Notes under the pieces: generated by a model
Databases searched by the model: none
What the model saw: only the letters and a program-made list of their open reading frames with translations
What the model was told of the DNA's origin: nothing
Shown: positions 1 through 39,402 of the stretch, piece by piece
Numbering within the stretch: position 1 is the first letter of the stretch
Layout: the number at the start of each line of letters is the position of its first letter
Program-made: the position numbers and the translations under genes
Virus record (IMG/VR): IMGVR_UViG_3300031963_000004
Span: 1 to 64,000 of that record
Length of the DNA: 64,000 nucleotides
Direction: 5' to 3' (one strand)

Positions 1-1
1 C

Positions 2-265
2 ACCTGGAACAGATGATATAATATCTTTTACGGTCATTTGGCGAGTTTGTATTTTAGCATCAGCACCGAACTGTTTTGGAGCACCTGAACTTGGTCCTGG
101 TTGCGGCACGCCTTCAGACATAGATTCACCACCGCCATCACCGCCTCCATTGCCATCACCGCTATAACCACTATAATAAGCGTAGCCAGGAAAAAAGTAA
201 CCACCGTAGTGCTTCTTACTTTTTTTGGTTTTCTTTTTTTCTGTTATGAATTCGTAGGCTCTCAT
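2..265 (-). CDS. Hypothetical protein with MRAYEFITE leader (5' part only; runs off window start)
   Basis: Manually translated: MRAYEFITEKKKTKKSKKHYGGYFFPGYAYYSGYSGDGNGGGDGGGESMSEGVPQPG...; its ATG overlaps the TGA of 262..678 (ATGA). Not in the ORF track. Confidence 0.8.
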   Translation of the reverse strand, partial: MRAYEFITEKKKTKKSKKHYGGYFFPGYAYYSGYSGDGNGGGDGGGESMSEGVPQPGPSSGAPKQFGADAKIQTRQMTVKDIISSVPG

Positions 266-678
266 ATATTAAAATATTCTTTACCAATAATTGCACTTGG
301 TGGTATTACACCACTGTATATGTAAGTTTCTTCACCTGTATCATCATCTCTTTGAAAATGCGGATCGGCTCTTAGCAGTTGTTGATTTAACTTATTTTGA
401 TCAATTTTAAAGATTACACCACCTTGATTCATTAATTCTAATATTTGTTTTTCATGTTCAGCATCGGGCTCTATCACACTTGGATCAACAAAACTACTTG
501 CTATATCTGGATAATTACTTAGATACACATAATTTTTATCACTCCAGTCAAACATTCTTAGATTGCCACCAGGCAATAGCCCGCTTTTTAATATACTGGG
601 CTCAAACGCTCTCAATGTCGCATGATATAATGGTTCGTAATCATATGCTATTTCTAAAATAATTTCTGCGGCTCTCAT
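262..678 (-). CDS. Putative ADP-ribosyltransferase-fold protein (Tpt1/KptA-like NAD-binding domain)
   Basis: LYHAT..SILKSGLLP..VYLS..IFKID..YIYSGVIPPSAI follows the LYHGT/GL.P/VHLS/IL.ID/VPP pattern of the Tpt1/KptA ART domain; MRAAEIILE leader. Confidence 0.6.
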   Translation of the reverse strand: MRAAEIILEIAYDYEPLYHATLRAFEPSILKSGLLPGGNLRMFDWSDKNYVYLSNYPDIASSFVDPSVIEPDAEHEKQILELMNQGGVIFKIDQNKLNQQLLRADPHFQRDDDTGEETYIYSGVIPPSAIIGKEYFNI

Positions 679-1592
679 TAGTAATCATTCTCTGCTGAGT
701 GATCTAAATTTAGATACAGTTGCCATTGACGATCTGGAAACTTTGATAGATAAGCATTTAACATGGTATTCCAACTACCTGCCATTCTTTCTTGTATCTG
801 ACTAAGTGTGATTGGATCATCACGCATATCCATTATTTGACCATATTCAAGTTCAAGTTCATCCGTGTCATAACCTTCATCTTTGTATTGGTCAACAATG
901 TCATCTACATCACTATCACTTTTAACTGGATGATCATCTAATGATATACCAAAATGGAACTGATATTTTTCGCCTTGATACTCTGGTTGTTTAGGTATTG
1001 CTATTAATATAGGCGCTATACCATGATAATACTTAAACATGTTATTACCTTTAGTAGCGGCAGTACACCAGCGTGTACCTTGACCATAGTAGCATGATGC
1101 AGGTTCATCTTGTGGTACTATTACTCTCCAACTGTCATCTTCGTATAATGTAAATGCAGTACCTTTATCTTTTAGTTGTTGAGCATCAGGATCAGGATAC
1201 TCATCCATAACGCTCATAAAATCACCAAAGTTACTATACTTGTTAATATCGTTGCGTGGACTAGGTATTTTTTTACGCTGAACAAGTTTATAAAATTTAG
1301 TCAAAGAGTCAAATAGATAACCATCTAATACATCTTCAAGTTTTGTACTAGCATCATTCGCATATGTTCTTGCTATCCATTGCACATATTGTTTGTTAGG
1401 TGTAGGATCTGCTTCTTGAAATCTATCTAATGCAAAGCCTAATAATTCTTCTGGATCAATTTGTTGTATTGGATCGTCGCCGTAAATTCTTTGAACTGTA
1501 CGGTCCCCCAACATTTTTTTATAAATCGCTGCACCTAAGTTTTGTACAGTTTTATTACGATCATATTCAATTAAAAATTCTGTTGCTCTCAT
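678..1592 (-). CDS. PcfJ-like (GxGTxWCT motif) protein
   Basis: ASCYYGQGTRWCTAA motif followed by MFKYY and EKYQFHF; MRATEFLIE leader. Confidence 0.5.
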   Translation of the reverse strand: MRATEFLIEYDRNKTVQNLGAAIYKKMLGDRTVQRIYGDDPIQQIDPEELLGFALDRFQEADPTPNKQYVQWIARTYANDASTKLEDVLDGYLFDSLTKFYKLVQRKKIPSPRNDINKYSNFGDFMSVMDEYPDPDAQQLKDKGTAFTLYEDDSWRVIVPQDEPASCYYGQGTRWCTAATKGNNMFKYYHGIAPILIAIPKQPEYQGEKYQFHFGISLDDHPVKSDSDVDDIVDQYKDEGYDTDELELEYGQIMDMRDDPITLSQIQERMAGSWNTMLNAYLSKFPDRQWQLYLNLDHSAENDY

Positions 1593-1595
1593 AGT

Positions 1596-1955
1596 TTATG
1601 CTACTTCTATAATAGGTACAAAGGCACTTTGATACATGTTCCAATCTTTATCCATAACTGTATAAGCTATGTAACGTTTACTTTCAGTATCTTTAACTCG
1701 AAACTTTATAAAAAGATTATTAGTGTTATCATGTAAAAGAAACATATGTCCTGGAGCTAACTGCTTAAGTTTAGCTTTAGCTTTCGGTAATTTATTTAGT
1801 GTATTTATAACTTCATTAGGTGTCCAATCTCGTTGAGCCATTCTATCAAAAAGATGTTTATCTATTATGATAGTGTAATTTCCAACCTGAATGTTACCTG
1901 CATACTCAAATGGTCTGCGTGATTTTTCTTCGGTTAGAAATTCAGTAGCTCTCAT
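1596..1955 (-). CDS. Hypothetical protein, possible BECR/DUF4258-like RNase fold
   Basis: Start moved to ATG 1955 (MRATEFLTE, ATGA overlap with upstream stop); IDKHLFDRMAQR resembles the H-x2/3-RM-x-QR helix of DUF4258/RelE-like toxins; ends in YTVM strand. Confidence 0.55.
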   Translation of the reverse strand: MRATEFLTEEKSRRPFEYAGNIQVGNYTIIIDKHLFDRMAQRDWTPNEVINTLNKLPKAKAKLKQLAPGHMFLLHDNTNNLFIKFRVKDTESKRYIAYTVMDKDWNMYQSAFVPIIEVA

Positions 1956-2629
1956 AGATTTCTTTCCCATATTACAAAAGGATCGTTTACTATAATAGTA
2001 CCATCTGGACGCTGCATGTAATTGCCACGGTGTAAGTCTAAACTATAGTTATGTTTTTTAGCAAAATTTTTAACTATGTATACGGTTTGTAATAATGCTT
2101 TAGCCTTATCTAAACCGCCTAGATAATCAATAACTTGGTCAGCTTCAAACCATTCGGGTTCATCGTCATTATCAAAACTATCATGTTGAGCCCAGTCAGC
2201 AATTTTTTCCCATGCTTTAAAATAATCGCCTTTACCTGCGTACTTAGCTGCTTGATCTAATAGGTAAATTACCTTACCTACTGAGTCTGGTAACTCTCGT
2301 AGTTCTTCCATTCTGGCTTGAATATATTTTTTACCTTGAAATTCAAAACTTTCAAAGCCACTAAATTTTGGTAAGTGAGGATTATCAGTATTTTTATTAC
2401 AATAGTTGATCCAATTAACAAACATTTTTTGATCTGGACTAAAATCTAAATAATGTCCTTGACGATAACCAAACACAATAAACACTTGACCGTTTGGCTC
2501 AAGATATGCTTGTTTATCTATACCGCCACCTAGATACTTGTAACCTTTGTCCATCAAAGCCTGTCTAATACCGCCGTGAATCTTACCGGCCATTTCTTCA
2601 AGTTCATTATTAAACTCAAAAAATCTCAC
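1952..2629 (-). CDS. Protein-kinase-like protein
   Basis: Gly-rich loop LGGGIDKQAY, NPHLPKF, hinge MEEL, catalytic loop DLHRGNYM and NDPF (DFG equivalent). Confidence 0.7.
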   Translation of the reverse strand: MRFFEFNNELEEMAGKIHGGIRQALMDKGYKYLGGGIDKQAYLEPNGQVFIVFGYRQGHYLDFSPDQKMFVNWINYCNKNTDNPHLPKFSGFESFEFQGKKYIQARMEELRELPDSVGKVIYLLDQAAKYAGKGDYFKAWEKIADWAQHDSFDNDDEPEWFEADQVIDYLGGLDKAKALLQTVYIVKNFAKKHNYSLDLHRGNYMQRPDGTIIVNDPFVIWERNL

Positions 2630-3024
2630 TGGAATATCTCCGGATGTTTCTCACCATATATTTTGATGAACTTACCTGCTAATACATCTGCTTCTTGTTC
2701 AATTGGACTACCAGGATAACTATCACCAGGCTGTATCTGTCCTAACTCACCTTGACGTACATGCACTAATTCATGAAATACTGTGCGTAGTATATCAACT
2801 AAGTTTCTGTTTTTAGCGTAAACCCAAACTTTGTTATCGTCAGTAGTATGACGACCGGTATGATGCCCTTGCTGTGCTTCTTCAGTATCTTTACTGTATT
2901 CAATGTCAGGGATGGTTTCTAGCTTGAGGATTCTCGCAGCCCAATTTACGAAATCGTCTAAGATTTCTTCTTCGTTAGCCACAAGGATATTAGATTTTGA
3001 TTCTGTTATTTCACGAATTTTCAT
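2626..3024 (-). CDS. Zincin-like metallopeptidase
   Basis: HExxH motif (FHELVHVRQ) with downstream third-ligand motif EQEAD; MKIREITE leader. Confidence 0.7.
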   Translation of the reverse strand: MKIREITESKSNILVANEEEILDDFVNWAARILKLETIPDIEYSKDTEEAQQGHHTGRHTTDDNKVWVYAKNRNLVDILRTVFHELVHVRQGELGQIQPGDSYPGSPIEQEADVLAGKFIKIYGEKHPEIFQ

Positions 3025-3031
3025 AATCTAG

Positions 3032-3039
3032 TATTTATC
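3032..3039 (-). promoter_or_regulatory. T4-late-like promoter heading the leader-tagged gene array
   Basis: GATAAATA 7 nt before ATG 3024. Confidence 0.6.
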
Positions 3040-3040
3040 G

Positions 3041-3745
3041 CTAGTTCCGCAACTTAGCGAGTTTGAAAAAGCGTAAAATAGTTAGATATATCCAGCCTAT
3101 ATCTACTTCGTAAGGCTTCTTACTAAGTTTAGGATTTGCTGGATCTAGATGATGATTGTTATGTAGTTCTTCGCCACCGATGATTATGCCCCATGGTGCA
3201 ATGTTTTTACTTTGATCTTTGGTCTCACCGTTACGATAACCCCACCAGTGACCTATACCATTGATTACTCCTGCTGCCCAAAAGGGTATCCACAGCATTT
3301 GTACGCCCCATATTATGGCGCCCATCCAACCAAAGACAATGAGGTTGAACACAAGGAGAATACTAATGCCAAGTCTGCTGTGAGGTGTGTATAACTTACG
3401 CTCAATCCAGTCATTAGGAGTACCGATGCCATAAGTATTAACCATCTCTTTATCTTTGCTTGCGTCATTGTATAATAAAGCTCCCTTAAATAATACATGC
3501 CATATACCGTGTGTGACTGGGCTATGTGGATCACCTTCTAGTTCACAGAATCTATGATGTTTACGATGAACTGCGACCCATTGTTTAGTAACCATACCTG
3601 TTGTTAACCATAACCAAAAACGCATGAAGTGGCTAATGATTGGATTAAACTCTATACCTTTATGTGCTTGACCACGATGTAAGTATAAGGTTACACATAT
3701 GATTGTTATGTGTGTTGTGATTAGTGTATATAAAATTGCTGTCAT
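3041..3745 (-). CDS. Membrane fatty acid (acyl-lipid/acyl-CoA, delta-9 type) desaturase
   Basis: Histidine boxes LHRGQAH, HRKHH and EELHNNHH, NGIGHWWGYRN, and hydrophobic TM segments. Confidence 0.92.
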   Translation of the reverse strand: MTAILYTLITTHITIICVTLYLHRGQAHKGIEFNPIISHFMRFWLWLTTGMVTKQWVAVHRKHHRFCELEGDPHSPVTHGIWHVLFKGALLYNDASKDKEMVNTYGIGTPNDWIERKLYTPHSRLGISILLVFNLIVFGWMGAIIWGVQMLWIPFWAAGVINGIGHWWGYRNGETKDQSKNIAPWGIIIGGEELHNNHHLDPANPKLSKKPYEVDIGWIYLTILRFFKLAKLRN

Positions 3746-3770
3746 AATTGCTCACTTTAACTCTATTTTG

Positions 3771-3837
3771 GGGCACGACTCCCGGAGAGTAGCGCAGCAG
3801 CCGCGCCCTCACGGTCCTAAGGTGAAGTCTTAAGTGC
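3771..3837 (-). ncRNA. Candidate structured cis-regulatory RNA in desaturase leader (family unassigned)
   Basis: 40/60 G+C over 3771-3830 in an AT-rich genome; pairings GCAC..GACUUC/GGAGUC.GUGC, UUCAC/GUGAG, GCGCGG/CUGCGC, ACUC/GAGU. Confidence 0.5.
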
Positions 3838-4006
3838 TTTTGTAACCAGCTATATTTTTTGCTTCTAGTTCTCTTAGGTCATTAGCTACATCACTTACAC
3901 CATGCCAATCTTCAATGGCAATCATAACCTGTAAGTATTCAAGCAATATTTCTTTTTGTGTTTGGAAGTCTGTGTAGTCTTTAATTAGAGTCTTTTTTTG
4001 GCTCAT
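3830..4006 (-). CDS. Small hypothetical protein (58 aa)
   Basis: Manual translation MSQKKTLIKDYTDFQTQKEILLEYLQVMIAIEDWHGVSDVANDLRELEAKNIAGYKST; fills the operon gap; below track cutoff. Confidence 0.7.
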   Translation of the reverse strand: MSQKKTLIKDYTDFQTQKEILLEYLQVMIAIEDWHGVSDVANDLRELEAKNIAGYKST

Positions 4007-4157
4007 CTTTTTTTTCTTCTTTCTTTTGTTCTTGTTGTACTATTGGAGCTGGTTCTTTTTTCTCTGGCATGTATTTGTCAACTGCCCAATTTGCAGTCAT
4101 CCAGCCCATTGCGCTGAAGAAGCCCCACACTATCATATAAGGTATCTCGCCTATCAT
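3981..4157 (-). CDS. Small membrane protein (58 aa)
   Basis: Manual translation MIGEIPYMIVWGFFSAMGWMTANWAVDKYMPEKKEP...; hydrophobic N-terminus, charged tail; ATGA overlap with upstream stop. Confidence 0.7.
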   Translation of the reverse strand: MIGEIPYMIVWGFFSAMGWMTANWAVDKYMPEKKEPAPIVQQEQKKEEKKDEPKKDSN

Positions 4158-4357
4158 TTTTTGTCCCTTTTAGAAACTGCATCTTTTAACATACTTTTGA
4201 GAAGTAAGATAACACGGTTCTTTTCTTTCTCAGTCAAGTATTTAACTAAGATTAACTTGTCATCATAACTTTTTGCGTTATCTAAAAACTCTTCGGGGAC
4301 TGTTAGTTTGGGTTTTTTGAACTTTTTTAGATTCGCTTTGATATCATCGTCGCTCAT
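4154..4357 (-). CDS. Hypothetical protein (67 aa)
   Basis: ORF abutting neighbours in the minus-strand operon. Confidence 0.65.
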   Translation of the reverse strand: MSDDDIKANLKKFKKPKLTVPEEFLDNAKSYDDKLILVKYLTEKEKNRVILLLKSMLKDAVSKRDKK

Positions 4358-4542
4358 TAATTTAATTTCGTCACATTCACTACGCTATCATCACCATACG
4401 CTGCGTTTAATAAGGCTTTAGCCTGTGACAAATCATCAGCAAATACAACTGTTTTGACTGTTAGTGAACCTGACTTACCAGTTTTGATTTTTAAGGTAGC
4501 AGAGTATTTGTTTATTTTATCTAAAAAGTCTTTAGCTTTCAT
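4357..4542 (-). CDS. Hypothetical protein (61 aa)
   Basis: ORF coupled to downstream gene (TAATG overlap); MKAKDFL start resembles the shared leader. Confidence 0.65.
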   Translation of the reverse strand: MKAKDFLDKINKYSATLKIKTGKSGSLTVKTVVFADDLSQAKALLNAAYGDDSVVNVTKLN

Positions 4543-4549
4543 TATTTTA

Positions 4550-4615
4550 TTAATGTTCCCCGTATGGGACTACTGGACGATCATCATCTGGGTTTGGGGT
4601 ATTTGGATCTCTCAT
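4550..4615 (-). CDS. Putative 21-aa micro-ORF (MRDPNTPNPDDDRPVVPYGEH)
   Basis: ATG overlaps the dps stop (ATGA) and the ORF fills the gap to the next gene. Confidence 0.4.
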   Translation of the reverse strand: MRDPNTPNPDDDRPVVPYGEH

Positions 4616-5052
4616 GCTCTATCTACTTTAAGAAAACTACGTAACATCCAACCATGTTTACCATGGGCATCGATACGTTCTGCTATGTAGTTTGCGATAG
4701 CTTGATTTTCTTCGTTTGCTAAGGGAAAAATAGCATTTAATAATTCAATAATTTTTAAGTTATCTTCATATAATTCAGCAAGCATTAATTCAGCACGTGG
4801 TATCTTGACCTGATCTTGAATTATACTTAATTCCATAAATCTTGCTAAACTGCCAGGAGTATATTGGTCAAGAACACGAATAAATTCTGCTGTTCTATCG
4901 ATAGAATTTTCAAATACTTCTGTGTTTAACTCATCTAAGAATTTGTGATATTCTGAAAAATTAGGACCCTCGACATTCCAATGGAAGTTATGTGCTTTTA
5001 AATAAAACACAAAACTACTTGCTAATAATATTTTTAACTGTTCTGCTAACAT
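4612..5052 (-). CDS. dps: Dps / ferritin-like DNA protection protein
   Basis: KAHNFHWNVEGPNFSEYHKFLDEL..IDRTAEFIR and terminal HGKHGWMLRS signature. Confidence 0.9.
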   Translation of the reverse strand: MLAEQLKILLASSFVFYLKAHNFHWNVEGPNFSEYHKFLDELNTEVFENSIDRTAEFIRVLDQYTPGSLARFMELSIIQDQVKIPRAELMLAELYEDNLKIIELLNAIFPLANEENQAIANYIAERIDAHGKHGWMLRSFLKVDRA

Positions 5053-5060
5053 AAATCCTC

Positions 5061-6233
5061 TTAGTGTTTCAATAGTAATGTACTCAACACGCCAGGATCT
5101 CTAGCAGTTAAATCTGGTTCGCCAGGAGTAATAATAACATTGTACTTCATCTGTGGATTCTTTCTACCCTTAGTTTCCCATTCATTGTATGTAAGAATAC
5201 TATTTGCACTGATACCATATTCGCCGGCTAATCTTTGTTTTAGTTCAGGGATCTTGTCAGGTATAACCTGCCATTGGCCTTGTGGACCCTTAACAAGATT
5301 TTTCTTTTCATCCTTAACTAACAAATCATAGAATAAGTTTGTTGGAACAATGCGACTATTTTTTGTTTGTGCTAAACTTGGATCCGCTGCTTTAACTTTC
5401 TTTTCTTGTGAAGTATGTGCACCTTCACTCCAGTTAATCATAAAGTTATTTGGCTTCTGACCTAATACAACATCAGCAACTTTAGTATAAGCATAGAACA
5501 GTACATTTGGATTAGATTGTGCTAGATTATACGCTAATTGAATATATTCTGGGCTAAAGAAGTCACCTGAATCATGCCAGCGAATAGTTACATTATATCC
5601 TGCTTTTTGTCCTTTAGCAACCTCTTTTTTAATCTCATTATCTAGTTGATTGAAGAAACCACTTGGATCATTAAGTAAATATGTTAGCATTCTTGCTCTG
5701 CTTAACCAGGCCGCTTCAAATTGTACAAAGCCACCTTTCATAGCAAAGCAATCTACTTTACAACTACCTGCTCCGGGACATGTGTTTACTATAATTAATT
5801 TACCGGTAGATTCATCTAAAGCAATACCAACTAATGCAGCAAAGCCAACATTAAAGAATTGTTCTTCAGCACCATCACTGTGCTTCATCTTTTCATTTTT
5901 CTTTAATATCTTATCTGGTCTTATTGATAAAGCTTGTTTAATATCTTCTTCTCTATAACGTTTACCCGAAGCATCATAGTATTTTACAACACTACTACGG
6001 TGAACATATGGTAACTTATATTTGTCTGTTTTACCTTTTTCTTGACCTGCAATACGACCCATGTAATCTTGAAATTCTTCATCACCAAACTCTCTTGATG
6101 GTGCAGGTAATTTAGTAGCTTCATCTACTTCTTGCTCTCCTGCTTGTGCTACGAACTCCTCAGGGCTCATAATTTGAACACCCGGTAATGCACCAGGCAT
6201 CTCGCTTTCTAATAGTAAGTCTGTAATTTTCAT
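5061..6233 (-). CDS. Phage Gp88-like protein (Cys-cluster, possible Fe-S)
   Basis: TCPGAGSCKVDCFAMKG (Cx5Cx3C), IRWHDSGDFF, FYAYTK; MKITDLLLE leader. Confidence 0.65.
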   Translation of the reverse strand: MKITDLLLESEMPGALPGVQIMSPEEFVAQAGEQEVDEATKLPAPSREFGDEEFQDYMGRIAGQEKGKTDKYKLPYVHRSSVVKYYDASGKRYREEDIKQALSIRPDKILKKNEKMKHSDGAEEQFFNVGFAALVGIALDESTGKLIIVNTCPGAGSCKVDCFAMKGGFVQFEAAWLSRARMLTYLLNDPSGFFNQLDNEIKKEVAKGQKAGYNVTIRWHDSGDFFSPEYIQLAYNLAQSNPNVLFYAYTKVADVVLGQKPNNFMINWSEGAHTSQEKKVKAADPSLAQTKNSRIVPTNLFYDLLVKDEKKNLVKGPQGQWQVIPDKIPELKQRLAGEYGISANSILTYNEWETKGRKNPQMKYNVIITPGEPDLTARDPGVLSTLLLKH

Positions 6234-8035
6234 TTGTTTGGTGTACCTGTAACTTTATTGTGTATCATAGTCCTAATATCTGCTTTTACATCATCTCCGA
6301 ATGTAGGACTTGTAACTGTATTTAATGCTCTTCCGATAGTAGACAACAAACCTAATCCTTTTCTAACATCCATACCTTGCTTAGGTTCTTGTTGCTGTGG
6401 TTGTTGATCTTTAATATAATATGGATCAGTCTCCTGTTCCTTAACCTTGTACTTATTTTTTAACTCTCTTGTTTTAGCCCAACGCTCATCATCAGGCATA
6501 TCATATGTTGCTTTTAATTCTCTGTAATATTCAGGATCAGGCAATCCAGATTTTTTTCTTAATTCCTGATGACGCCTATGTAGTTTTTCTTGCGTTGATT
6601 CTTTGTCTGTTTCTTCTAAGTTAGCGTTACCTTGTTGAGGCACCATTCTAACGTTAACACCTTTTGGTACAGTGGTGTTAATGGTCATTTCATCACCTAA
6701 TTCTCTACTTGTATCCATCCCTCTTACTAGAGTATTTCCTTGACTATCTGGTCTAATAGATGCAGTTCTTCTATTAAAAGTTTCTTCACCATCTCTATTC
6801 ACGTAATTTTTTGTAGAATACATATAGGAAGGAGAAGATGCAGGAGGATTTTGTTCTAACACTGCCTCATGCTGCTCAATCATCTTACCTTCTAAATATT
6901 GTGCAACTGAGTTTAAGTAATCATTTGCTTTAGTTATTTTAGCCTGTACCCAACCATCAAGACCTTGTATTTCGCTTACATCTCTTATGCAGTGAAATAT
7001 TTTTTCTGCATCTTTGGCTGCTGCAATTAACTGTGACCTAGCCATTTCAACTTCGTGGTCAGATTTCTTAGGCATTAATTCTGGTTTAAATTTAATACCT
7101 TGACCTGGCATTAATAGTAATTCATCTTCGGTTACACGGGCTTCAATCATACCTTGTAGTATTGCACTTTCCGCTACACCTTTACTTCCACGATTTTTCC
7201 ACTTTACACCATGTATATTATCTAATCGTTTGACTTCAGATTTACTCAATGCAGTTAAATCTCTGGCATATTTTTGATTAAATCCTTCTGGATCTTCGCC
7301 AGCACCATACTTATCTGTAGCTTTATGTATTAATCCGGTTTTAGTTCTTGTTACTTCACCTTCCGCCACACCTTGCCCTCTGTCGTAAATACCAGGTGAG
7401 CCTACTTTACTTCTTGGATCTCCATATACTTTGTATACTTGATCGGTAGGTTCATTGCCTTTAGCAGGTCTAACATCAGTGATGATTGAGCCTCTTCCTA
7501 GCGCATAGTTAATCTTATCCTTAGCATCATATTCATCATCAGCGGAAACTAAGACAGTACGTGTATCGTCAGACAGATTGTTGTAATATGTTACAACAAA
7601 TTTTGTGTCTGTACCTTCCGTCACACCTCCACTCGTAGCAGATTTACTCTTGTTCATTTGACCCCCTCTGTTCTGTAAATCCTTAGCAATTTCTTTTTCG
7701 TCAAATGGTCTTCCAATGAATGAAGTAATTTTGTCAAAGAAGTTTTCATCAACTTGTGATTTTAAACCTTGCTTCATTTCTTCTTTTGATTTGCCGTATT
7801 TTTTCATAAACTCTCTATCTTTTAATTCACGTAGGTCCATAATTAGTTGCTTTACACTACCTTCTTTTAAGTTCTTAGGCTTTTTACCAGCTTTCTTCAT
7901 TGAAACGGCAATAGCTGCTTGTTGAGCAGGATTAGCTGCTTCTTCAGCCCTTCTTTTCATTTTACCCATTTTAGAAGGTGCGGGTGCAACTGATCCAGAT
8001 ACTGTTGCGCCCACTGACATTTCGTTTATTTTCAT
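6230..8035 (-). CDS. Modular putative head-internal protein (601 aa) with repeated xVxE motifs
   Basis: Start moved to MKINEMS (ATG 8035); spacers NLKEG, QVDEN, GVTEG, GVAEG, GVAES, RVTED, NLEET separate short domains. Confidence 0.6.
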   Translation of the reverse strand: MKINEMSVGATVSGSVAPAPSKMGKMKRRAEEAANPAQQAAIAVSMKKAGKKPKNLKEGSVKQLIMDLRELKDREFMKKYGKSKEEMKQGLKSQVDENFFDKITSFIGRPFDEKEIAKDLQNRGGQMNKSKSATSGGVTEGTDTKFVVTYYNNLSDDTRTVLVSADDEYDAKDKINYALGRGSIITDVRPAKGNEPTDQVYKVYGDPRSKVGSPGIYDRGQGVAEGEVTRTKTGLIHKATDKYGAGEDPEGFNQKYARDLTALSKSEVKRLDNIHGVKWKNRGSKGVAESAILQGMIEARVTEDELLLMPGQGIKFKPELMPKKSDHEVEMARSQLIAAAKDAEKIFHCIRDVSEIQGLDGWVQAKITKANDYLNSVAQYLEGKMIEQHEAVLEQNPPASSPSYMYSTKNYVNRDGEETFNRRTASIRPDSQGNTLVRGMDTSRELGDEMTINTTVPKGVNVRMVPQQGNANLEETDKESTQEKLHRRHQELRKKSGLPDPEYYRELKATYDMPDDERWAKTRELKNKYKVKEQETDPYYIKDQQPQQQEPKQGMDVRKGLGLLSTIGRALNTVTSPTFGDDVKADIRTMIHNKVTGTPNK

Positions 8036-12925: not shown

Positions 12926-13807
12926 CTAAGGTCTTAATAGTGGCGGTATCCCCGCACGACTAACTTTACTGCCTAATTTTTTAGCATTGTCTTGTATACT
13001 ATATGGAGTAACGTCAACTGTTAATGCTGTTTTAAATCTTGGGTCATTCTTTTGTTTTGGGCTAGGAATATAACCACTAGCTCCTTCTACCATAGATTCA
13101 GGTAAACTCAATTGATTACTATGTAATTCATCTCGTTTGTTTCTTAGCTTCTCAATTATACCTTTACTACGCAATGCCTTAAAGGCTAAGTTTTCAGGAC
13201 TGAACTCACCATGCATGTCTAATCCTGTTTGTCTATATTTTTTAATTGTAGCTAAAACATGATTCATGCTTTCATAATCTGCATGTTTAAGTGCAAGATT
13301 AGCTAGTCTAGCTAGTTTATTAAACTTCAATTTAGCTGAGGCCTGATCAGGATCGGCTTTACGCTTTCTTGGTAATCTAATCCATTTGTCAAAAACAATA
13401 CTGTACTCACCTAAACTGATGACGGGTTGATTTGTGTCTTGAACGTATAATTCAACATCATATCCCCCTATAGTAATATCATGTGTATTGTTATATAGAA
13501 TCTTTTTAGCATCAAATAATTCGCGGTATATAACATCATTCTCTAAAGCATTTATATCCACTAAAATGTGCAAATCTATGTCACTGTGCTTAGTATAGGT
13601 ATAAGCTGCATTACTTCCCGATAATGTTACATCGGAAACATTAAGATGAGGAATACCCAAATGATCTACGAAATCTTCTGCTATAACAAGTAACTGTTTA
13701 CGGACCTCAGGATCCATTCTGTCGCCGTTGAAAATGACTGGATTTAATTCATTGTGAAAGAAAATCGCATCGTGTAGGTTAAACTGTTCTATTTCTCTAA
13801 GGTTCAT
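12926..13807 (-). CDS. Pol-beta superfamily nucleotidyltransferase
   Basis: LSGSNAAYTYTKHSDIDLH (GS..DxD) and third acidic residue in YDVELYVQD. Confidence 0.7.
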   Translation of the reverse strand: MNLREIEQFNLHDAIFFHNELNPVIFNGDRMDPEVRKQLLVIAEDFVDHLGIPHLNVSDVTLSGSNAAYTYTKHSDIDLHILVDINALENDVIYRELFDAKKILYNNTHDITIGGYDVELYVQDTNQPVISLGEYSIVFDKWIRLPRKRKADPDQASAKLKFNKLARLANLALKHADYESMNHVLATIKKYRQTGLDMHGEFSPENLAFKALRSKGIIEKLRNKRDELHSNQLSLPESMVEGASGYIPSPKQKNDPRFKTALTVDVTPYSIQDNAKKLGSKVSRAGIPPLLRP

Positions 13808-17195: not shown

Positions 17196-17900
17196 TCAGA
17201 CTTTTTGCTGAATTTTATAGATTTTTCCTACGTAATCACCCATACTCAATCTCAGTAAGGTTTCATCCGACTCGTTATCATAATCTACGAAAAAAGCATT
17301 ACTACAATATCTATATCTCCAATAACGAATTTTCTTGTCTGTACCATTTAACCAAGTCTTTAGTGCCGAACAGGGGTAAAAAGTCGTGTTGTGTCTTTGA
17401 AAGAACTCAGCCATTTCATCGTGCATTTCTAAACTAATATTTTTTGCTCTTAGATATAGTCTAAATTTATGCTTTGGATTTTTTCTATATAGTGTATCCG
17501 GATTAGCTAATAAATTTACTCTTGTGTATTTTATTTTTGGATTGTTTAACTTACACAGAGTTTCTAGTTCGGCTAATTTTGACAAATCGTTACTGTACAC
17601 GGATCCTGTCTTATAATCAATTCGTACCATACAGTCAGGTCCATTATTAATAGTTTTCCAAATAGTAAAACTATCTAAAAAAGCCTTGTTACTAGGAAAA
17701 TGAACCTTATTTGCAGAAGTATCAACAGGTATAGAAATAAGAATTGTGTCCCGAACTCTATTTAATAGAACGTTTTCTAACTCTCTAACCGTTTTTGCAT
17801 ATCTAGTACAATGCAGTAACTCGGCAGTAAAACTAGCTTTGTATAGAAACTTATTAAAAAACAAAGTTTGCTTGTCTACTACCTTGAATACCTTATTCAA
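17196..17900 (-). CDS. Hypothetical protein (234 aa)
   Basis: Long ORF overlapping clpA stop; TTG start. Confidence 0.7.
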   Translation of the reverse strand: MNKVFKVVDKQTLFFNKFLYKASFTAELLHCTRYAKTVRELENVLLNRVRDTILISIPVDTSANKVHFPSNKAFLDSFTIWKTINNGPDCMVRIDYKTGSVYSNDLSKLAELETLCKLNNPKIKYTRVNLLANPDTLYRKNPKHKFRLYLRAKNISLEMHDEMAEFFQRHNTTFYPCSALKTWLNGTDKKIRYWRYRYCSNAFFVDYDNESDETLLRLSMGDYVGKIYKIQQKV

Positions 17901-20169
17901 TTGTAATCATCCCATCTGCGCCAACCTTAGCGACTACATTTCTTGTTACATTGAATTCTATTTTATTATCATCTCCCATCACTGCCATAACAGTGCTGTT
18001 CTTGATGTTTTCAAAAAGAATCTTTTTACCTAATGGGACACGAATCAACTCGTCAATTTTTCTTTGCAATGGTCTAGCACCCATTTTCTTATCATACCCA
18101 TGTTCAGCGAGATACTCAACGACTGGTTCTGATAGATTGAGATAAATGCTATGTGTGCTTCTTAAGTTACGGCGCAACTCATCAGCAAACTTAATAACAA
18201 TTTTCTTAATTGCTAGATGGTCAAGTTTGTTAAACTTACACACCATATCTAGACGGTTTCTAAATTCAGGCTTGAAGAATTCTTTCATTGCTCTATCATC
18301 TTCACCTGTCTTTTCTTGTGCACCAAAGCCAATATTATTTCTTTCACTGTCGCTTGCACCTAGATTACTAGTCATAATAACGATACAGTTTTTAGCGTTT
18401 GCCTCTTTACCGTTACTACCTGTAATTCTACCTTCGTCAAGTAATTGCAAAAATACGTCAAATACTTCCGGATGTGCTTTTTCAACTTCATCAAATAATA
18501 AAATTGAGTAAGGGTTTTGTTGAACGTCACTAATTAATTTACCACTGCCTGCGTTACCTTCACCATAACCAACATAGCCTGGAGGCGCACCGATGAATTT
18601 AGCAATAGCATGTTTCTCGCTATATTCACTCATATCATACTTGAGCAATTTCATGTCAAGGTTTTTACTGAGTAATCTAGCCAATTCAGTTTTACCTGTA
18701 CCAGTAGGTCCTAAAAATAGATAACTACCGATTGGTCTATTTTCATTGTTGATGCCAGCAAAGCTTACATAGATTCTTTCTAGAACCTTTTCTACTGTTT
18801 CATCCTGACCATATAGTTTATCTTTGATATTCTGTTCAAGGTTAGTAATTCTGTCACTATTTTCTTTATCATTCAATTTATCTGCTGGTACACCAGTCAT
18901 ACGTTCTACTTGCTCATGGACAAGTTGCTTAGTAATAAAGATACCTTTATTTTCTAACACTCGTTGCTTAGCACAAGCAGCATCAAGCAAATCAATTGAC
19001 TTATCTGGATTCTTACGGTCATGAATATATCGTTTAGCGCAATTAGCTGCTGCTTCAATTGCTTCATCCAAGATTTTTACATCATGGAAGTCATTTAATC
19101 TTTCACTTAAACCCTTAAGAATACGAATAGTTGTGTCATGATTAGGTTCATCGATGCTTACACGATAGAATCTACGCATCAATGCACGGTCTTTTTCAAA
19201 ACTCTCGTAGAATTCTTCCCAGGTTGTACTTGCAATTACTTTTAATGTACCTTTTGTAATTGCAGGCTTAATCATATTAGCAAAATCTACTGCACCATTT
19301 GTAGCACTACCTGCCTTCATTGTATGTGCTTCGTCAATGAACAGAATAGCTTTCTTTTTTGTATTCAATGCTTGGATAACATGTTTAATCTTTTCTTCAA
19401 AGTCACCGCGATACTTTGAACCTGCAAGCAATGATCCAATTTCTAATGAGAATACTTCATGATCTAGTAAGAATTCTGGCACGACACTATCTACAATCAT
19501 TTGTGCAAGACCTTCGGCGATAGCAGTCTTACCAACACCAGGGTCACCAACCATTAATACATTAGATTTAAACTTCTTAGCCAACACATTGATAATATCA
19601 TCAAGTTCATTGCTACGACCAATCAATGGTTCAATCTTGCCTTCTTTGGCTAATTTAGTAAGATTAGTAGTGTGTTCTTCTAATATTTCGTCGGCTTGTG
19701 AATCTGTCAGTCCACCTACATACTCTCCACCCTTATAATGTTTCTGCCAGAAAGGGACGAATTCGTTTTTAACAACTCCGTATTTCAATAAGAAATAGTG
19801 AGCATGACTATTTGTTTCAGCAAGAATACTTAGGTACAGGTCAATTGTAGTTACTGTTTTTCTACCAGTAAATAGAACCTGTGTGACACTTCGGTTAATA
19901 ACTCTTTCTAAACTATTTGTTTTTCTAGGAGTAACTTCTTCACCCTGATCTACGTTAACCTGTATTACTCGCAGACTATCCAAATAATCCGAAATTTCTT
20001 TTGTTAGATTTTCGGTATCTACATTGAATTGTCCTAAACATTTCTGAAATGGCACATGTTTAATCAAAGCCAATAGTAAATGCTCAACAGTACAATACTG
20101 ATGGCTACGATTTTTGGCAAAAGTAATTGCTTGCTCAATAATTGCTTCGATTTCTACAGAGTTGTTCAC
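17893..20169 (-). CDS. clpA: ATP-dependent Clp protease ATP-binding subunit, ClpA-like
   Basis: Clp N-domain, two AAA+ modules (GDPGVGKT/LFIDEAH; GPTGTGKT/LLFDEVEK), IGF loop (NNIGFG), GARPL, no middle domain. Confidence 0.92.
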   Translation of the reverse strand: MNNSVEIEAIIEQAITFAKNRSHQYCTVEHLLLALIKHVPFQKCLGQFNVDTENLTKEISDYLDSLRVIQVNVDQGEEVTPRKTNSLERVINRSVTQVLFTGRKTVTTIDLYLSILAETNSHAHYFLLKYGVVKNEFVPFWQKHYKGGEYVGGLTDSQADEILEEHTTNLTKLAKEGKIEPLIGRSNELDDIINVLAKKFKSNVLMVGDPGVGKTAIAEGLAQMIVDSVVPEFLLDHEVFSLEIGSLLAGSKYRGDFEEKIKHVIQALNTKKKAILFIDEAHTMKAGSATNGAVDFANMIKPAITKGTLKVIASTTWEEFYESFEKDRALMRRFYRVSIDEPNHDTTIRILKGLSERLNDFHDVKILDEAIEAAANCAKRYIHDRKNPDKSIDLLDAACAKQRVLENKGIFITKQLVHEQVERMTGVPADKLNDKENSDRITNLEQNIKDKLYGQDETVEKVLERIYVSFAGINNENRPIGSYLFLGPTGTGKTELARLLSKNLDMKLLKYDMSEYSEKHAIAKFIGAPPGYVGYGEGNAGSGKLISDVQQNPYSILLFDEVEKAHPEVFDVFLQLLDEGRITGSNGKEANAKNCIVIMTSNLGASDSERNNIGFGAQEKTGEDDRAMKEFFKPEFRNRLDMVCKFNKLDHLAIKKIVIKFADELRRNLRSTHSIYLNLSEPVVEYLAEHGYDKKMGARPLQRKIDELIRVPLGKKILFENIKNSTVMAVMGDDNKIEFNVTRNVVAKVGADGMITIE

Positions 20170-22884: not shown

Positions 22885-23655
22885 TTGAGTAAAAGAAAGA
22901 CCGGAGCACTACGCAACAGTGATCCTAAATTTTCAAATAAAAAAGAGTATCAAACATTCTACACACAGAACTCAAACACAATTCCTTTTGAAACAAATAG
23001 GCCCAAACTCAATAATAGGGTTATCCAATTAGTACCAAAATCAGTCAATCAAGAAAAATATATACTAGCATTACTAGATCCGGAAATAGACATAGTTATA
23101 GCAAGTGGACCAGCTGGCACGGGTAAAACATACCTAGCTATGCAGGCTGCATTGAAAGCTATGCGTGAAGGATCATGTAAGAAAATAATATTATCTAGAC
23201 CGGCTGTAGGCGTTGAAGATGAAAAGCATGGATTTTTACCCGGTGATATTAATCAAAAAATGGAACCATGGACAAGACCATTGCTTGATGTAGTCAAAGA
23301 ATACTACACTGCAAAAGATATAAGTTATATGCTAGACGAACAAATTATTGAAATTGCTCCACTAGCTTTTTGTAGGGGTAGAAACTTTAAACATAGTTGG
23401 GTAATACTAGATGAGGCTCAAAATTGTACTCCTAGTCAATTAAAAATGATTATGACAAGAATCGGAGAAGGAAGCAAGATAATAATAACAGGTGATGTTG
23501 AACAAGCCGATAGAAAAACAAATGATAACGGACTATTGGACTTGCAGAAAAGACTAAAGACTGCACATGTGCCTGGATTAGAAATTTGTAACTTCGAGGT
23601 GAAAGATGTCCAACGACATCAAATCATTGAATACATTTTAAAAATGTATCAATAA
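22885..23655 (+). CDS. phoH: PhoH-like ATPase
   Basis: GPAGTGKT, LSRPAV, RGRNF, ILDEAQN, MTRIGEGSK, TGDVEQAD; TTG start with AGGAG RBS. Confidence 0.93.
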   Translation: MSKRKTGALRNSDPKFSNKKEYQTFYTQNSNTIPFETNRPKLNNRVIQLVPKSVNQEKYILALLDPEIDIVIASGPAGTGKTYLAMQAALKAMREGSCKKIILSRPAVGVEDEKHGFLPGDINQKMEPWTRPLLDVVKEYYTAKDISYMLDEQIIEIAPLAFCRGRNFKHSWVILDEAQNCTPSQLKMIMTRIGEGSKIIITGDVEQADRKTNDNGLLDLQKRLKTAHVPGLEICNFEVKDVQRHQIIEYILKMYQ

Positions 23656-34486: not shown

Positions 34487-37400
34487 TCACTTGATACCGC
34501 TGAGTTTCTTCCACTCATATAGAACATCTTTTGACTTTGATTCAGTCACTTTAACACTTGTATGTGGTAGAGTTGTCTGATCACGCTTTTGACGGTTTAA
34601 GCCACCGGTAATAAAGTTAGTCATAAACTCAATGTCTTGCGTAGCCTCATTTGGCTCGTTTTCAAATGATTCTTCAACGTGGTCACAACCGCAGCTACTT
34701 TCGTTCATTCCGCACTCGTTGCACATAGGCTCATCACCTTCTTCTAGGCTACTTGTATCTTTGTACTTTTTACCGTCGATTTCGAATTCTTCGCCAGGTG
34801 GTGTTTGACTTAGCTTTTCTGTAAATTCATTGCCTTCGTCAGCTTGACCATATGCTTCGTCTACTTCTTTCTCTTTTCTATGATCTTCTTCATCAGAGCC
34901 TTTTTCAATCTGGTCTTCTTCCTCGCCTTCATCTTCTTCTCCTTCTGGTTTGTGCATAGTATCGCCTGCATTGTCAACAGGCACTTCATCAGCATAATCT
35001 TCACCAGAGCTTTGCTGAGGTGCTGCACTTAAGCCTGCCATTTTCTTAATTAGTTCTAGCACACTGTCGCCACCATCAATAACTTCAGGCCCGTCAACTG
35101 ATACCATTTCTATGCCACCATTGTCGCTACTATCACTTGTCATAGGAGCACCATATGGTGATGATTGTGATTGTTCTCCGCCACCGAAAATACCACCCAT
35201 TCCAGCGTTCTTTAATAATGCGATTAACTCACCTGCGTCACCCTCAGTAGCAGTAACAGTAACACTATCGTTACCGTCTGAGCTTGTGTTGGTGTTTATA
35301 CTAATGTTCTCGTTGAGTAATGAATCTAAGTCATTAGCCCAACTTTCAAATTGTCTATCCATATCTACGTTTTCTTTCATTGGTTTTTTATCTGACTTGT
35401 TAGGCTTATTAATGTCTATTGCATTTGGATATACTGGATCCATTGGTACCGGCATAGGTACATCTTTTTGACCCTTCTTAGGAGGATCACTACTCCACGT
35501 GCCTGTTAATTCACCTGGCTTATCGCCGCCCTTAATAGAACCTTCTTTCATCTTGCTTGCTTCTTTTACAGTTACTGGATGAGTTTCACCACCGAACTTG
35601 AATACATCTCTTCCTTCATCTTTGGCTTGCTTAGCTGCCCAAGCAAAAGGACCTTCTGCTACTGGTTCTTCTACTACTGGCTGAGGCATCATTGGTGACT
35701 CGCCCATTATTTTATCTTTCTTTGAATACTTGTGTAGGTCTAATGCATCACGTAGTGCTTCACTCATATGACCAGTTGTTTTGTATTCTTCAATGTGTGA
35801 TTGTAACTCCATCAACATTTCTTCAATGCTCATCTGAGTTTCACGCATCATTTGGCTAAAGTTAATACCTTCTTTAACTTTCTTTTTGTTTCTTAATGCG
35901 GCAAAATCTTTTGAATCTAACTTACCTTTTGGTTCAGCAACATCAAGATTCTTTTGACCGCCTTTTAATGCTTCTTTAACATTATCTGGACTTGGCTTCT
36001 TACCTGCTGCTTTCATATGAGCATCATATTCACCTTTGCTTACTTCACGGCTGTTGACTGTATATTTTTCTTCGTCAACTTTCTTAGCGATTTCATGACC
36101 TTTCTTGATAACTTTCTTTGGAAGATCAGTTGCTGGTTTTGAACCGTAGCCTGCTTGTTTCTTAGCAGCAGCCATACCAATCGCATATTTGTTCTTTGCT
36201 CTTTCTGCAATCATTTCTTCAGTAGAATCGATCCAGTCTTTTAATTTTTTCTTTTTGGCAGCAGCTTTGGCAGCTTTTTCTCTTTCCTCTTCTTTTCTCA
36301 ACCATGCTTCTTCGTCGGCTGGAGCAGATTTTGGTTTTTTGTCTGATATTGTATGAACTTTGCCTTTAGCTGATTTTCCAGGTTGACCTTTAATAACCTT
36401 GGATCCTGCGTCACTAGCACCTTGCCATTTTTTAGCATCTTTAGTAGCGTCACTTTCTTGACCGCCGCGACTTTTTACTTCTTTTTCTTCACCTTCTTCA
36501 TCAGTATCGTATGCTTTACCATACTTACCTGTATGTTTTTTGCCCTTAAGGTCAGCCATCTTAGATGCTTCGTACATTAATTCAAGCATTTGTCTCATAT
36601 CAGTTTGATTTACATGAGATTCAGAAATTTCTTTTTTAGGTGTTGTACTAGCTAAAGATTTAATTCTATTGAGTTGCTCTAAATCTTCTTTGAACCAATT
36701 GAGTGGATTCAATTTACTACCTAAGGCTTTGAGATTTTCCCAATTCTTTTCGCCTTGCTCTCTTTCTTTTTCTTGCCAACCTGGACCAGGATATTGACCG
36801 CCTCTATAAGGATGTTTTGTATCCCATTCAATTTCATCTTCACTACGTGTACCTACAACACCTCTTTGATATTTTTTATCAGTTAAATCAGGGCCTGCTT
36901 TAGGTTCTGCTTTAGGTTCTGGTTCTGCGTATCTTGATCTATTTTCAATAGGAGGCAATTCGTTACCTAAAGTTTTATCGTTATCACCTGTACCATCTCT
37001 TTGATACCACTTACTTAACTCAGCTTTATCAACGGGTTCACTTGAATAGCCAGGTCCTGGTCCTTGCGCTGCTTTTAATGCGCTTTGTAATCCAGGACTA
37101 CCTTTTAATCTCTCTCTTGCAGCAGTTGCTTCCCAATCTACATTTGCATATGGGTCTACTTTATTCTGTATCGGTGCCGGCGCACTATCACGCTTAAATG
37201 TTGGGTGATCACGTACAGGAAATACATTATCATCTCTTGTTTGTTCTGTGTCATACGCTGGTTTTTCACCAGGGCCTAAATGCGATGGACGATAATCTGT
37301 ATCGGGAATAACATTAGTTGTATTAGGAACAACATTAGTTGTATTAGGGACAACATTAGTTGTATTAGGGACATCGGACGCAGGGAAATTTTGTTCCCAT

Positions 37401-38134
37401 GGTTCATATGGTCTTTCAGGGTTTGTTGGTGTTACAACTTCATTACCATCTTTATCTTTCGTAAGAAGATACGTTAGGCCGCTACCTGCCAATGCACTTG
37501 CAGCCATAGCCTTTCCTATGTTGCCTGGAGAAGTTTTAATACTTCCAGACTTACTTGCTGCTGGTTCACCTTTTTCTGCCGCCGCCGCCATTTTTTCCGC
37601 TGCTCCGGCTTCTTTCTCTGCTGCTTTGATATAATCAGCAGCCAATGATGAAGTTTTAGGATCAAATGTAGTTGGTACTTCTTTACCTGTAGCAGTACTT
37701 TTAGGTGTTACAACATTCTTAGGTCTGAAATCTGGCCTAGGAGCAGCTGCCGGCTTACCTTTAGAAGCAGAACCTTGCATGCCAGTAAATGTAGTCGGCA
37801 CATCTTTACCTGTAACAGTACTCTTGGGTACAGCTTTTCCATCCTTAGGCTCAAATTTTGGTCTAGCATCAGCAGGATAAGGTTTCGATGGTCTTTCTGC
37901 ATTAGGCTTGACATCAGATGGATATTTTAGTGGTGCGTTATATTTTACATCTTTGGGTTGAGGAGCTTTGTTTTGAGCATATGGACCTTGAGACATTTTT
38001 TCTTGTCTACCAGCGAATCTTTGAGTAGCTGTTCCACCTTTTTCTCCGGCGCCGGCAACTCTAGTAGCACCTTTTTCTATTCTGGTGGCTGCATCAGTAA
38101 CTGCCTCATATATGTTTATGTCTTTGATTTTCAT
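34487..38134 (-). CDS. Large low-complexity putative head-internal/scaffold-like protein (1215 aa)
   Basis: MKIKDINIYE leader; K/E/P/A-rich; many (V/L/I/M)xE-(G/A/S/N) sites; ends EWKKLSGIK. Confidence 0.6.
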   Translation of the reverse strand: MKIKDINIYEAVTDAATRIEKGATRVAGAGEKGGTATQRFAGRQEKMSQGPYAQNKAPQPKDVKYNAPLKYPSDVKPNAERPSKPYPADARPKFEPKDGKAVPKSTVTGKDVPTTFTGMQGSASKGKPAAAPRPDFRPKNVVTPKSTATGKEVPTTFDPKTSSLAADYIKAAEKEAGAAEKMAAAAEKGEPAASKSGSIKTSPGNIGKAMAASALAGSGLTYLLTKDKDGNEVVTPTNPERPYEPWEQNFPASDVPNTTNVVPNTTNVVPNTTNVIPDTDYRPSHLGPGEKPAYDTEQTRDDNVFPVRDHPTFKRDSAPAPIQNKVDPYANVDWEATAARERLKGSPGLQSALKAAQGPGPGYSSEPVDKAELSKWYQRDGTGDNDKTLGNELPPIENRSRYAEPEPKAEPKAGPDLTDKKYQRGVVGTRSEDEIEWDTKHPYRGGQYPGPGWQEKEREQGEKNWENLKALGSKLNPLNWFKEDLEQLNRIKSLASTTPKKEISESHVNQTDMRQMLELMYEASKMADLKGKKHTGKYGKAYDTDEEGEEKEVKSRGGQESDATKDAKKWQGASDAGSKVIKGQPGKSAKGKVHTISDKKPKSAPADEEAWLRKEEEREKAAKAAAKKKKLKDWIDSTEEMIAERAKNKYAIGMAAAKKQAGYGSKPATDLPKKVIKKGHEIAKKVDEEKYTVNSREVSKGEYDAHMKAAGKKPSPDNVKEALKGGQKNLDVAEPKGKLDSKDFAALRNKKKVKEGINFSQMMRETQMSIEEMLMELQSHIEEYKTTGHMSEALRDALDLHKYSKKDKIMGESPMMPQPVVEEPVAEGPFAWAAKQAKDEGRDVFKFGGETHPVTVKEASKMKEGSIKGGDKPGELTGTWSSDPPKKGQKDVPMPVPMDPVYPNAIDINKPNKSDKKPMKENVDMDRQFESWANDLDSLLNENISINTNTSSDGNDSVTVTATEGDAGELIALLKNAGMGGIFGGGEQSQSSPYGAPMTSDSSDNGGIEMVSVDGPEVIDGGDSVLELIKKMAGLSAAPQQSSGEDYADEVPVDNAGDTMHKPEGEEDEGEEEDQIEKGSDEEDHRKEKEVDEAYGQADEGNEFTEKLSQTPPGEEFEIDGKKYKDTSSLEEGDEPMCNECGMNESSCGCDHVEESFENEPNEATQDIEFMTNFITGGLNRQKRDQTTLPHTSVKVTESKSKDVLYEWKKLSGIK
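37310..37372. repeat. 3 x 21-bp in-frame tandem repeat (VPNTTNV)
   Basis: aacattagttgtattagg(a/g)ac x3. Confidence 0.9.
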
Positions 38135-39186: not shown

Positions 39187-39402
39187 TTACTTTTTAATCG
39201 TATCTAATTTTTCTTCGATTCTATCTAACTGAGCTTGTAGCACTGTCAACTTTTCATTGGTAGCCTGTGCTTTAATATTGCTAATTTCTATTTTCTTATC
39301 CAGTTCACCTACAGTAGAGGTTATAGTTAAATAACCACCGCCCCCTAAACTGCAAGCACCTACTACTATCCAAGATAATTGACCCGTGCTAAAATCTAAC
39401 AT
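39187..39402 (-). CDS. Small membrane-anchored coiled-coil protein (71 aa)
   Basis: N-terminal hydrophobic segment, C-terminal heptads (LTVLQAQLDRIEEKLD). Confidence 0.65.
   Translation of the reverse strand: MLDFSTGQLSWIVVGACSLGGGGYLTITSTVGELDKKIEISNIKAQATNEKLTVLQAQLDRIEEKLDTIKK

Follow-up and report, generated by a model that had tools for sequence, protein, structure and literature searches.

The first 64 kb of the 223-kb IMG/VR contig IMGVR_UViG_3300031963_000004 are the stretch of DNA analysed here (hereafter the window), and their first part, 2..3024, holds six adjacent and tightly coupled minus-strand genes that start with a short leader peptide of the type MRAxEF[ILV]xE and are otherwise unrelated. 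The first gene of this array, F (2626..3024, 132 residues), carries the eight-residue leader MKIREITE (3001..3024). Behind it come gene E (1952..2629, 225 residues), which has a GTG start overlapping the TGA of F and a diverged leader, MRFFEFNNELEE (2594..2629); gene D (1596..1955, 119 residues, basic), with MRATEFLTE (1929..1955); gene C (678..1592, 304 residues), with MRATEFLIE (1566..1592); gene B (262..678, 138 residues), with MRAAEIILE (652..678); and gene A (2..265), with MRAYEFITE (239..265), of which the window holds the 5' part, the contig end cutting the gene. Neighbouring genes meet as ATGA at B/A and E/D, as GTGA at F/E and as TAATG at C/B, with a spacer of 3 nucleotides at D/C, and ATGAGAGC is the DNA start of genes A to D. 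In a sister strain the orthologue of gene A is full length (487 residues) and is the last gene of the array; it is basic and Gly/Tyr-rich after the leader and has a C-terminal DUF6934 domain. A preliminary description of this DNA had reported six coupled genes with near-identical leaders that then diverge. All of the starts are as it gave them, on the minus strand; E, though, has a GTG start and a diverged leader. Canonical leaders are present on homologues of E.

The phage has a G+C content of about 36% (35-36%), and nearly all genes of the window lie on the minus strand. Both the source samples and an Rfam 'freshwater-2' cis-regulatory RNA motif (55662..55736, minus strand; 62.9 bits, above the gathering score), located upstream of a 136-residue gene at 55254..55664, point to an uncultured giant myovirus of fresh water. 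PA5oct, Atu_ph07, Phosso and the Rak2/121Q group are distant relatives, with 35-44% protein identity. Comparison of positions 1..8000 with cultured phages by megablast gave no match, and tblastn searches of cultured phages with the Gp88-like, 1215-residue and 255-residue proteins gave no useful relatives. Homologues of the Gp88-like gene (5061..6233) are found at more than 160 IMG/VR loci, at 56-75% identity, indicating a large clade. Related loci amounting to 1.3 Mb were gathered through protein similarity, independently of the leader, and a scan of the whole of IMG/VR with the leader DNA pattern gave at least 120 stretches; the counts of leader proteins given below are taken from the combined set of about 2.4 Mb of related metagenomic phage DNA.

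In six-frame translations of the 1.3 Mb of related loci, the strict motif M[RK]..[ED][FILM]..E is found 118 times forward and 10 times reversed, an excess of about 12-fold that places the leader far beyond chance. At 89 of the 118 sites it stands at the start of an open reading frame of at least 50 codons, and the window itself has six forward and no reversed occurrences. The combined set yields 251 distinct leader proteins, 202 of which start with MRA, and their cargos (the part behind the leader) form about 94 clusters at a minimum alignment coverage of 60%. Most cargos are separate single-module genes of 60-700 residues. They include 19 different Pfam families, with no similarity left once the leader is removed, and BLASTP among the array cargos without their leaders likewise detects no mutual similarity. 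A motif scan of relatives had been proposed as a check, and it finds the leader to be portable, sitting on many unrelated cargos (the roughly 94 families). A shared start of this kind could also be a remnant of tandem duplication or arise by chance from AT-rich N-termini, and Lys or Arg at position 2 is indeed common in the genes of the window. This origin was considered and rejected, and retains next to no probability: the folds and Pfam families of the cargos differ, and the motif is strongly enriched and concentrated at the starts of open reading frames.

The conserved element could instead be RNA or DNA, either a context for translation initiation or coupling (the ATGA overlap and the AGA second codon) or a recombination site. 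In favour of such an element, 138 of 247 leader genes overlap the upstream stop (99 as ATGA and 39 as TAATG), and Arg2 is encoded by AGA in 59 of 61 leaders, compared with 54% of Arg codons genome-wide, a preference that fits the ATGA overlap. However, synonymous changes are seen at codons 3, 5, 6, 7 and 9, whose residues stay constant. In 61 leader genes, Ala3 is encoded by GCA (35), GCC (14), GCT (7) and GCG (5), Glu5 by GAA (49) and GAG (12), and Phe6 by TTT (39) and TTC (22), with mixed Leu/Ile/Val codons at position 7. Such codon variation shows the leader to be conserved as a protein, and selection acts mainly on the peptide. The leader is also retained over considerable distances. Among the 120 best homologues in family C, which range down to 38% identity, 105 start with it, the exceptions being mostly truncated or mis-called at the start, and it is retained by homologues of gene B as well. 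In both AlphaFold models (B and C) the leader is disordered.

Exchange of cargo can be followed in L297, a locus from a near-identical strain. It matches the window at 100% identity as far as a point within gene C, and over the 3' half of C the identity declines. In place of gene B this strain has a 229-residue M48 peptidase starting MRAYEFIEEDVSRRDFLRW, whose RR motif marks a twin-arginine translocation (Tat) signal, and gene A is 86-93% identical to that of the window. The suggestion that cargos are swappable is thus borne out at gene B. The companion suggestion, that the leader DNA is a recombination anchor, is not supported: the only conserved leader DNA is ATGAGAGC (8 contiguous bases) plus scattered bases, and in this one strain pair the exchanged tract begins within a cargo gene (C), which lends no support to a crossover at the leader DNA. 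Both observations, added to the synonymous variation, make a nucleic acid element quite improbable as the object of conservation. Differences in spread are also seen in the assembly collection, where the exact 2613-residue protein is found in 25 blocks and the Gp88-like protein in 37, and exact C on only 2 contigs; in the DNA around the 2613-residue gene, replication genes, and no head genes, lie just past the window end. Several independent assemblies end inside the leader array (window 1..700, and contig ends in L298 and L299), which suggests strain-level heterogeneity that breaks assemblies. In a 261-residue leader protein at L086:14621-15403, the N-terminal part is A-like (80% identity) and the C-terminal part D-like (50%), a hybrid that indicates shuffling of cargo modules between genes.

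As to the identity of the array cargos, Pfam gave no match for genes A-F, and B, C and E gave none when their sequences were compared with solved structures. The model of B (predicted local distance difference test, pLDDT, 79.7) was matched by Foldseek to Tpt1/KptA at E = 6e-5 (TM 0.52) and to DarT1 at 1e-3; as modelled, B has an ADP-ribosyltransferase fold (Tpt1/KptA/DarT-like), in agreement with its earlier label. The Gp88 label is confirmed by a Pfam match. In the case of C, a PcfJ-like assignment could not be upheld: its family of 405 homologues has no Pfam domain at E <= 0.01, a fold search of its model (pLDDT 87) against solved structures gave no match, and a PcfJ-like entry in a viral library reaches only E = 0.056. 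The remaining labels are tentative, namely kinase for E (one T7-type protein kinase PHROG match, 1e-6), peptidase for F (an HExxH motif only), RNase-like for D (a single weak match, to a PHROG of unknown function) and nucleotidyltransferase for the gene at 12926..13807 (a Pfam match below the curated cut-off). A Pfam survey of 79 representatives gives a wider view of the leader cargos. It includes cell-wall hydrolases (Glyco_hydro_19 in five members, and Phage_lysozyme2 with LysM), ADP-ribosyltransferases (ADPrib_exo_Tox and ART-PolyVal), and Kinase-PolyVal, Peptidase_M48, ParB_N, Amidoligase_2, NT5C, REGB_T4 and a TAT signal. Several of these domain families owe their definition to polyvalent proteins, for which packaging and injection have been predicted (PMC5512222). 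The cargos carry domains of a kind predicted or known to enter with phage DNA.

The closest known counterpart of the leader is found in T4, where ipII and ipIII (NC_000866) start MKTYQEFIAE. This likeness had been pointed out in the preliminary description and was confirmed in the T4 record, the window consensus having the core E-F-[IL]-x-E in common with it. The first 10 residues of IPIII suffice for head targeting, with residues 4 and 7 serving in targeting and residues 8 and 10 in processing, and gp21 cleaves after L/I-X-E (PMC9026906). The leader matches the T4 sequence at the functional residues F, I/L and the terminal E. Other head-core proteins of T4 have starts such as MAKINELLRE (gp24), MLKEQLIAE (gp22) and MNEPQLLIE (gp21), and the internal proteins of T-even phages are diverse, having only this signal in common (PMC3012670; PMC12373910).

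A gp21-family prohead protease and a T4-type head module are found on the same contig as the window, at 164-185 kb (locus L339). The module comprises a portal (Portal_T4, E = 8e-106), a protease (Peptidase_S77, E = 2e-29; 103 bits against a cut-off of 27), a capsid protein (Gp23, E = 7e-99), a 74-residue protein in the gp67 position starting MKLFEMFD, a protein in the gp68 position, and a scaffold starting MLDAIKPLLES. No head module had come to light when the first 200 loci and the window were searched locally with the head proteins of T4 and pEa_SNUABM_47, and other lineages swamped a scan based on a protease alignment headed by a PA5oct-like phage; a query with the protease sequence of a clade member then returned this locus. 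The clade protease is 31-36% identical to that of T4, and leader genes and clade protease are found together on two other large contigs. The capsid N-termini bear on the specificity of the protease. The T4 capsid propeptide has 65 residues (PMC5694885), and its L63-T64-E65 cleavage site aligns with L-A-E in the phage of the window, L-A-E in L281, L-V-E in a PA5oct-like phage and L-R-E in pEa_SNUABM_47. L-x-E at the cleavage position is thus kept in four jumbo lineages, and from this alignment the L/I-x-E specificity looks conserved across the group. Just upstream of the portal, L339:4241-7003 encodes a 920-residue protein with a Peptidase_M15_4 cell-wall hydrolase domain; relatives have a tape-measure annotation at this place.

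We therefore favour, with a probability of roughly 0.6, a T4-type capsid-targeting propeptide, comprising the nine-residue MRAxEF[ILV]xE and its MKxxE[IL]xxE variants, that has been placed on an expanded, enzyme-rich and variable cargo set, so that the array would probably represent a changeable enzyme kit carried inside the virus particle. The packaged-effector idea of the preliminary description is retained here in its portable leader, its T4 likeness, its protease and its changing cargo, and is given up in its recombination anchor and its PcfJ label. We infer that the array proteins bind the core, are cleaved after the Glu, are packaged and injected, and are made late. As a mechanism, the array proteins would be made together with the structural proteins, and the leader would attach them to the scaffolding core while the prohead is being assembled. 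The phage's gp21-family serine protease would then cut after the terminal Glu of [ILV]-x-E, freeing the enzyme inside the head, and at least part of the cargo would enter the next host cell with the DNA. With an address this short and self-contained, any gene placed behind it would become cargo, which would explain both the roughly 94 unrelated cargo families and the cargo differences between near-identical strains.

Proteomic annotations of the distant relative PA5oct provide a link to the virion. The PA5oct protein between portal and protease (the gp67 position) starts MKINDIITE and is annotated as 'structural protein, ESI-MS/MS' (electrospray ionization tandem mass spectrometry), an annotation shared by the PA5oct protease; metagenomic relatives of the gp67-position protein start MKAKELLVE or MRAAELLVE. 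The leader-carrying PA5oct protein annotated in virions by this method is gp333. Cargo family C is homologous to PA5oct gp279 (Foldseek E = 1e-8; hhalign 99.6%, E = 9e-24), which is recorded in purified virions by mass spectrometry and has the leader-like start MKLFEVFTLYE. The same annotations can be turned towards a different conclusion, in which the leader is a propeptide of the prohead core and the proteins behind it are assembly or core components, or enzymes acting within the head, with no delivered effectors among them. The clearest leader-carrying relatives (the gp67-position protein and the PA5oct structural proteins) are after all morphogenetic or structural, and gp22, gp67, gp68 and gp24 of T4 have similar N-termini and are no injected effectors. 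About 94 fast-turnover unrelated families, many of them enzymes, are unlike a conserved assembly pathway, however, and the cargo families differ between strains that are 100% identical elsewhere. We consider a purely morphogenetic role unlikely, and the best placed of the alternatives.

Slightly less likely again is a signal that has nothing to do with the capsid, such as a protease-removed inhibitory prosegment by which toxic enzymes are held inactive, a recognition tag for the phage's own Clp-type ATPase or the n-region of an export signal, with proteins that act in the producing cell. Such a signal would suit the cargos in which a Tat export signal directly follows the leader, as seen at L297:15559-16248 (the M48 peptidase), at L148:3861-4493 and in other members of that cluster. 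Several of the cell-wall hydrolases could serve lysis, and the window encodes a ClpA/B-like ATPase. Most cargos, on the other hand, have no hydrophobic or Tat segment after the leader, and a non-capsid signal leaves unexplained both the likeness to the T4 capsid-targeting sequence and to head-module proteins and the detection of the relatives in PA5oct virions. For the Tat-bearing subset itself, removal of the leader would expose the Tat signal, which points to one of two routes: onward transport to the periplasm as a second step, or export straight from the cell in which the protein is made.

If the leader directs proteins to the head, it should be missing from genes of other functions. None of the recognisable replication and metabolism genes of the window (among them clamp loader, Clp-like ATPase, PhoH, MazG, NUDIX, deoxynucleoside monophosphate kinase and cytidylyltransferase) has a leader, nor does any of its tail genes (sheath, tube, gp13-/gp15-like and fibres). 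This absence is what a head-specific signal predicts. Leader scans of PA5oct covered 1-50 kb and 78-140 kb, and its first 50 kb (129 features, mostly small genes of unknown function) contain no leader.

Expression can be judged from a motif upstream of the array. ATAAATAC (3031..3038, minus strand) lies 8 nucleotides upstream of F and is a candidate late-type promoter element. Its ATAAATA core is found within 45 nucleotides upstream of a same-strand start in 14 of 23 occurrences (odds ratio 69, p = 4e-18), and ATAAATA(C) sites are located at the head of the array, at tail and fibre operons and at the portal and gp67-position genes of L339. From its sequence context, ATAAATA(C) is plausible as a late-type promoter element. 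The T4 late consensus TATAAATA was tried as the array promoter and dropped in favour of the observed motif, as it is not enriched and is even depleted in the window (3 observed against 10.8 expected). A late-promoter motif at the array head had been described before; it holds in so far as the motif is common to structural operons, and the sequence at 3031..3038 is GATAAATAC and not the T4 consensus. Scans of 1..6500 for sigma-70 promoters and terminators stayed at chance level.

Several observations weigh against a T4-type address with delivered cargo. The window consensus is one residue shorter than the T4 sequence, in which the targeting residue Tyr4 has no clear counterpart here, and L/I-x-E, at three residues, carries little information by itself. 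The array cargos are mostly acidic (pI 4.5-5.5), and T4 internal proteins are basic and bind DNA. PA5oct gp279 has Leu where the leader has its terminal Glu, and the PA5oct virion list is a broad one (93 of 461 products, including enzymes unrelated to the virion; PMC7318152), so that two positives amount to weak or modest evidence. The Tat-bearing cargos could also be exported straight from the cell that makes them, with no packaging involved. Placed 8 nucleotides before the ATG of F, ATAAATAC would leave almost no 5' untranslated region. Finally, the clade has no cultured member.

The same data allow a bolder joint reading, to which we give somewhat less than even odds as a whole. It holds that an entire clade of uncultured freshwater giant phages loads a very large and fast-changing set of separate enzymes into the head by means of a universal, T4-derived tag of nine residues, the domain types being those that are fused into polyvalent proteins in other phages; that, in the subset with a Tat signal behind the tag, removal of the tag exposes a second address which sends the injected enzyme to the periplasm of the new host; and that the tag can serve as a handle for listing injected effectors and counter-defence proteins from metagenomes.

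The principle of such a system is known from T-even phages, and what would be new is its scale, its enzyme content, its organisation in arrays, its presence in a distant clade of giant phages and the subset with Tat signals. The likeness to the T4/T-even internal proteins (IPI, IPII, IPIII and Alt) consists of a short leader ending in [IL]-x-E with an E-F-I-x-E core, otherwise unrelated cargos (PMC3012670; PMC12373910), a gp21-family protease with T4-type portal and capsid, cargo that differs between related phages and, in the case of Alt, the ADP-ribosyltransferase fold of one cargo class. Here, by contrast, the leader has nine residues and not ten, the genes form coupled arrays of six to seven where T-even phages have two small loci, and the cargos comprise about 94 families, many of them enzymes and many acidic, where T-even phages have around ten small and mostly basic inhibitor proteins. 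A Tat signal is an addition seen on some of the cargos. In the giant phages phiKZ, 201phi2-1 and SPN3US, many head-loaded proteins are trimmed after Glu by a diverged gp21-like protease (PMC5694885), but there the propeptides mostly measure 80-160 residues, the sites are S/A/G-x-E, and there is no common portable short tag; the tag here has nine residues and is T4-like. The polyvalent proteins described by Iyer et al. 2017 (PMC5512222) contain the same conflict domains (ART-PolyVal, Kinase-PolyVal, ParB_N, metallopeptidase and amidoligase) and are predicted to travel with the DNA. They fuse two to fifteen domains in one polypeptide, whereas the genes here are small, separate and tagged, and so do not belong to that class. 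The Dar proteins of phage P1 and the MuF-fused toxin domains likewise act against the host and are taken up into heads by means of a specialised head-binding part. That part is a large domain or a partner protein and no short cleavable tag, and the phage lineages are unrelated.

Because proteins carried in the head act before phage gene expression, they rank high among the candidates for taking over the host and overcoming its defences. The T-even phages are known to have only about ten of them, and three of these block variants of a single restriction family (PMC12373910). Should the tag described here function as in T4, it marks hundreds of candidate delivered enzymes in uncultured phages, and the T4 loading mechanism would be old and widely shared among giant phages with a T4-type core. 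Polyvalent giants and arrays of small tagged genes would then look like two answers to one problem of delivery. As a ready-made and testable tool, the tag also lends itself to loading chosen proteins into large phage heads in laboratory systems.

Outside the array, the window contains further candidate leader genes, all on the minus strand. The strongest are the Gp88-family gene (5061..6233, 390 residues, MKITDLLLE), which has a leader of the same type in 24 of 24 orthologues examined, mostly the eight-residue MKxxELxE followed by G, and the gene for a basic protein of 255 residues (38141..38908, MKITEIITE), whose homologues keep MRINEVITE-type leaders down to 38% identity. Both had been listed in the preliminary description. 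The region of the 255-residue protein is about 85% identical to L372, with flanking tail genes at about 92%, and looks like a local hot spot of divergence. A second basic protein on that list (6230..8035, 601 residues) has a degenerate leader, MKINEM, and qualifies through its homologues only, in which a canonical leader directly precedes the NPAQQAAIA motif also present in the window protein. A 198-residue protein (39402..39998, MKSLRQYLTE) is doubtful as a leader carrier because its PA5oct homologue gp282, a virion protein by mass spectrometry, has an N-terminus without L-x-E, and the listed gene at 12926..13807 is unsupported. One close relative was found for the 1215-residue protein (34487..38134), which starts MKIKDINIYE. 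A leader-like candidate absent from the earlier list is a small gene at 4357..4542 (61 residues, MKAKDFLDK), which has Asp in place of both Glu of the orthologue start MKAKEFLEK.

Among the remaining genes of the window are several auxiliary ones, encoding a fatty-acid desaturase (3041..3745), a ferritin/Dps-like protein (4612..5052), the ClpA/B-like ATPase (17893..19554) and PhoH (23140..23655); the reading frames of the last two extend upstream of their first ATG. Upstream of the desaturase gene lies an intergenic stretch of 84 nucleotides (3746..3829) that is unusually G+C-rich for a genome of about 35% G+C, and for which Rfam returned no family. In the relatives L281 and L290 the desaturase gene is found directly 3' of the capsid gene. 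Finally, a TnsA-like endonuclease N-terminal domain (Pfam E = 5e-22) is encoded at 40529..40969 on the minus strand, within the tail-tube gene block, and the PA5oct homologue of this gene bears the annotation 'head closure'.

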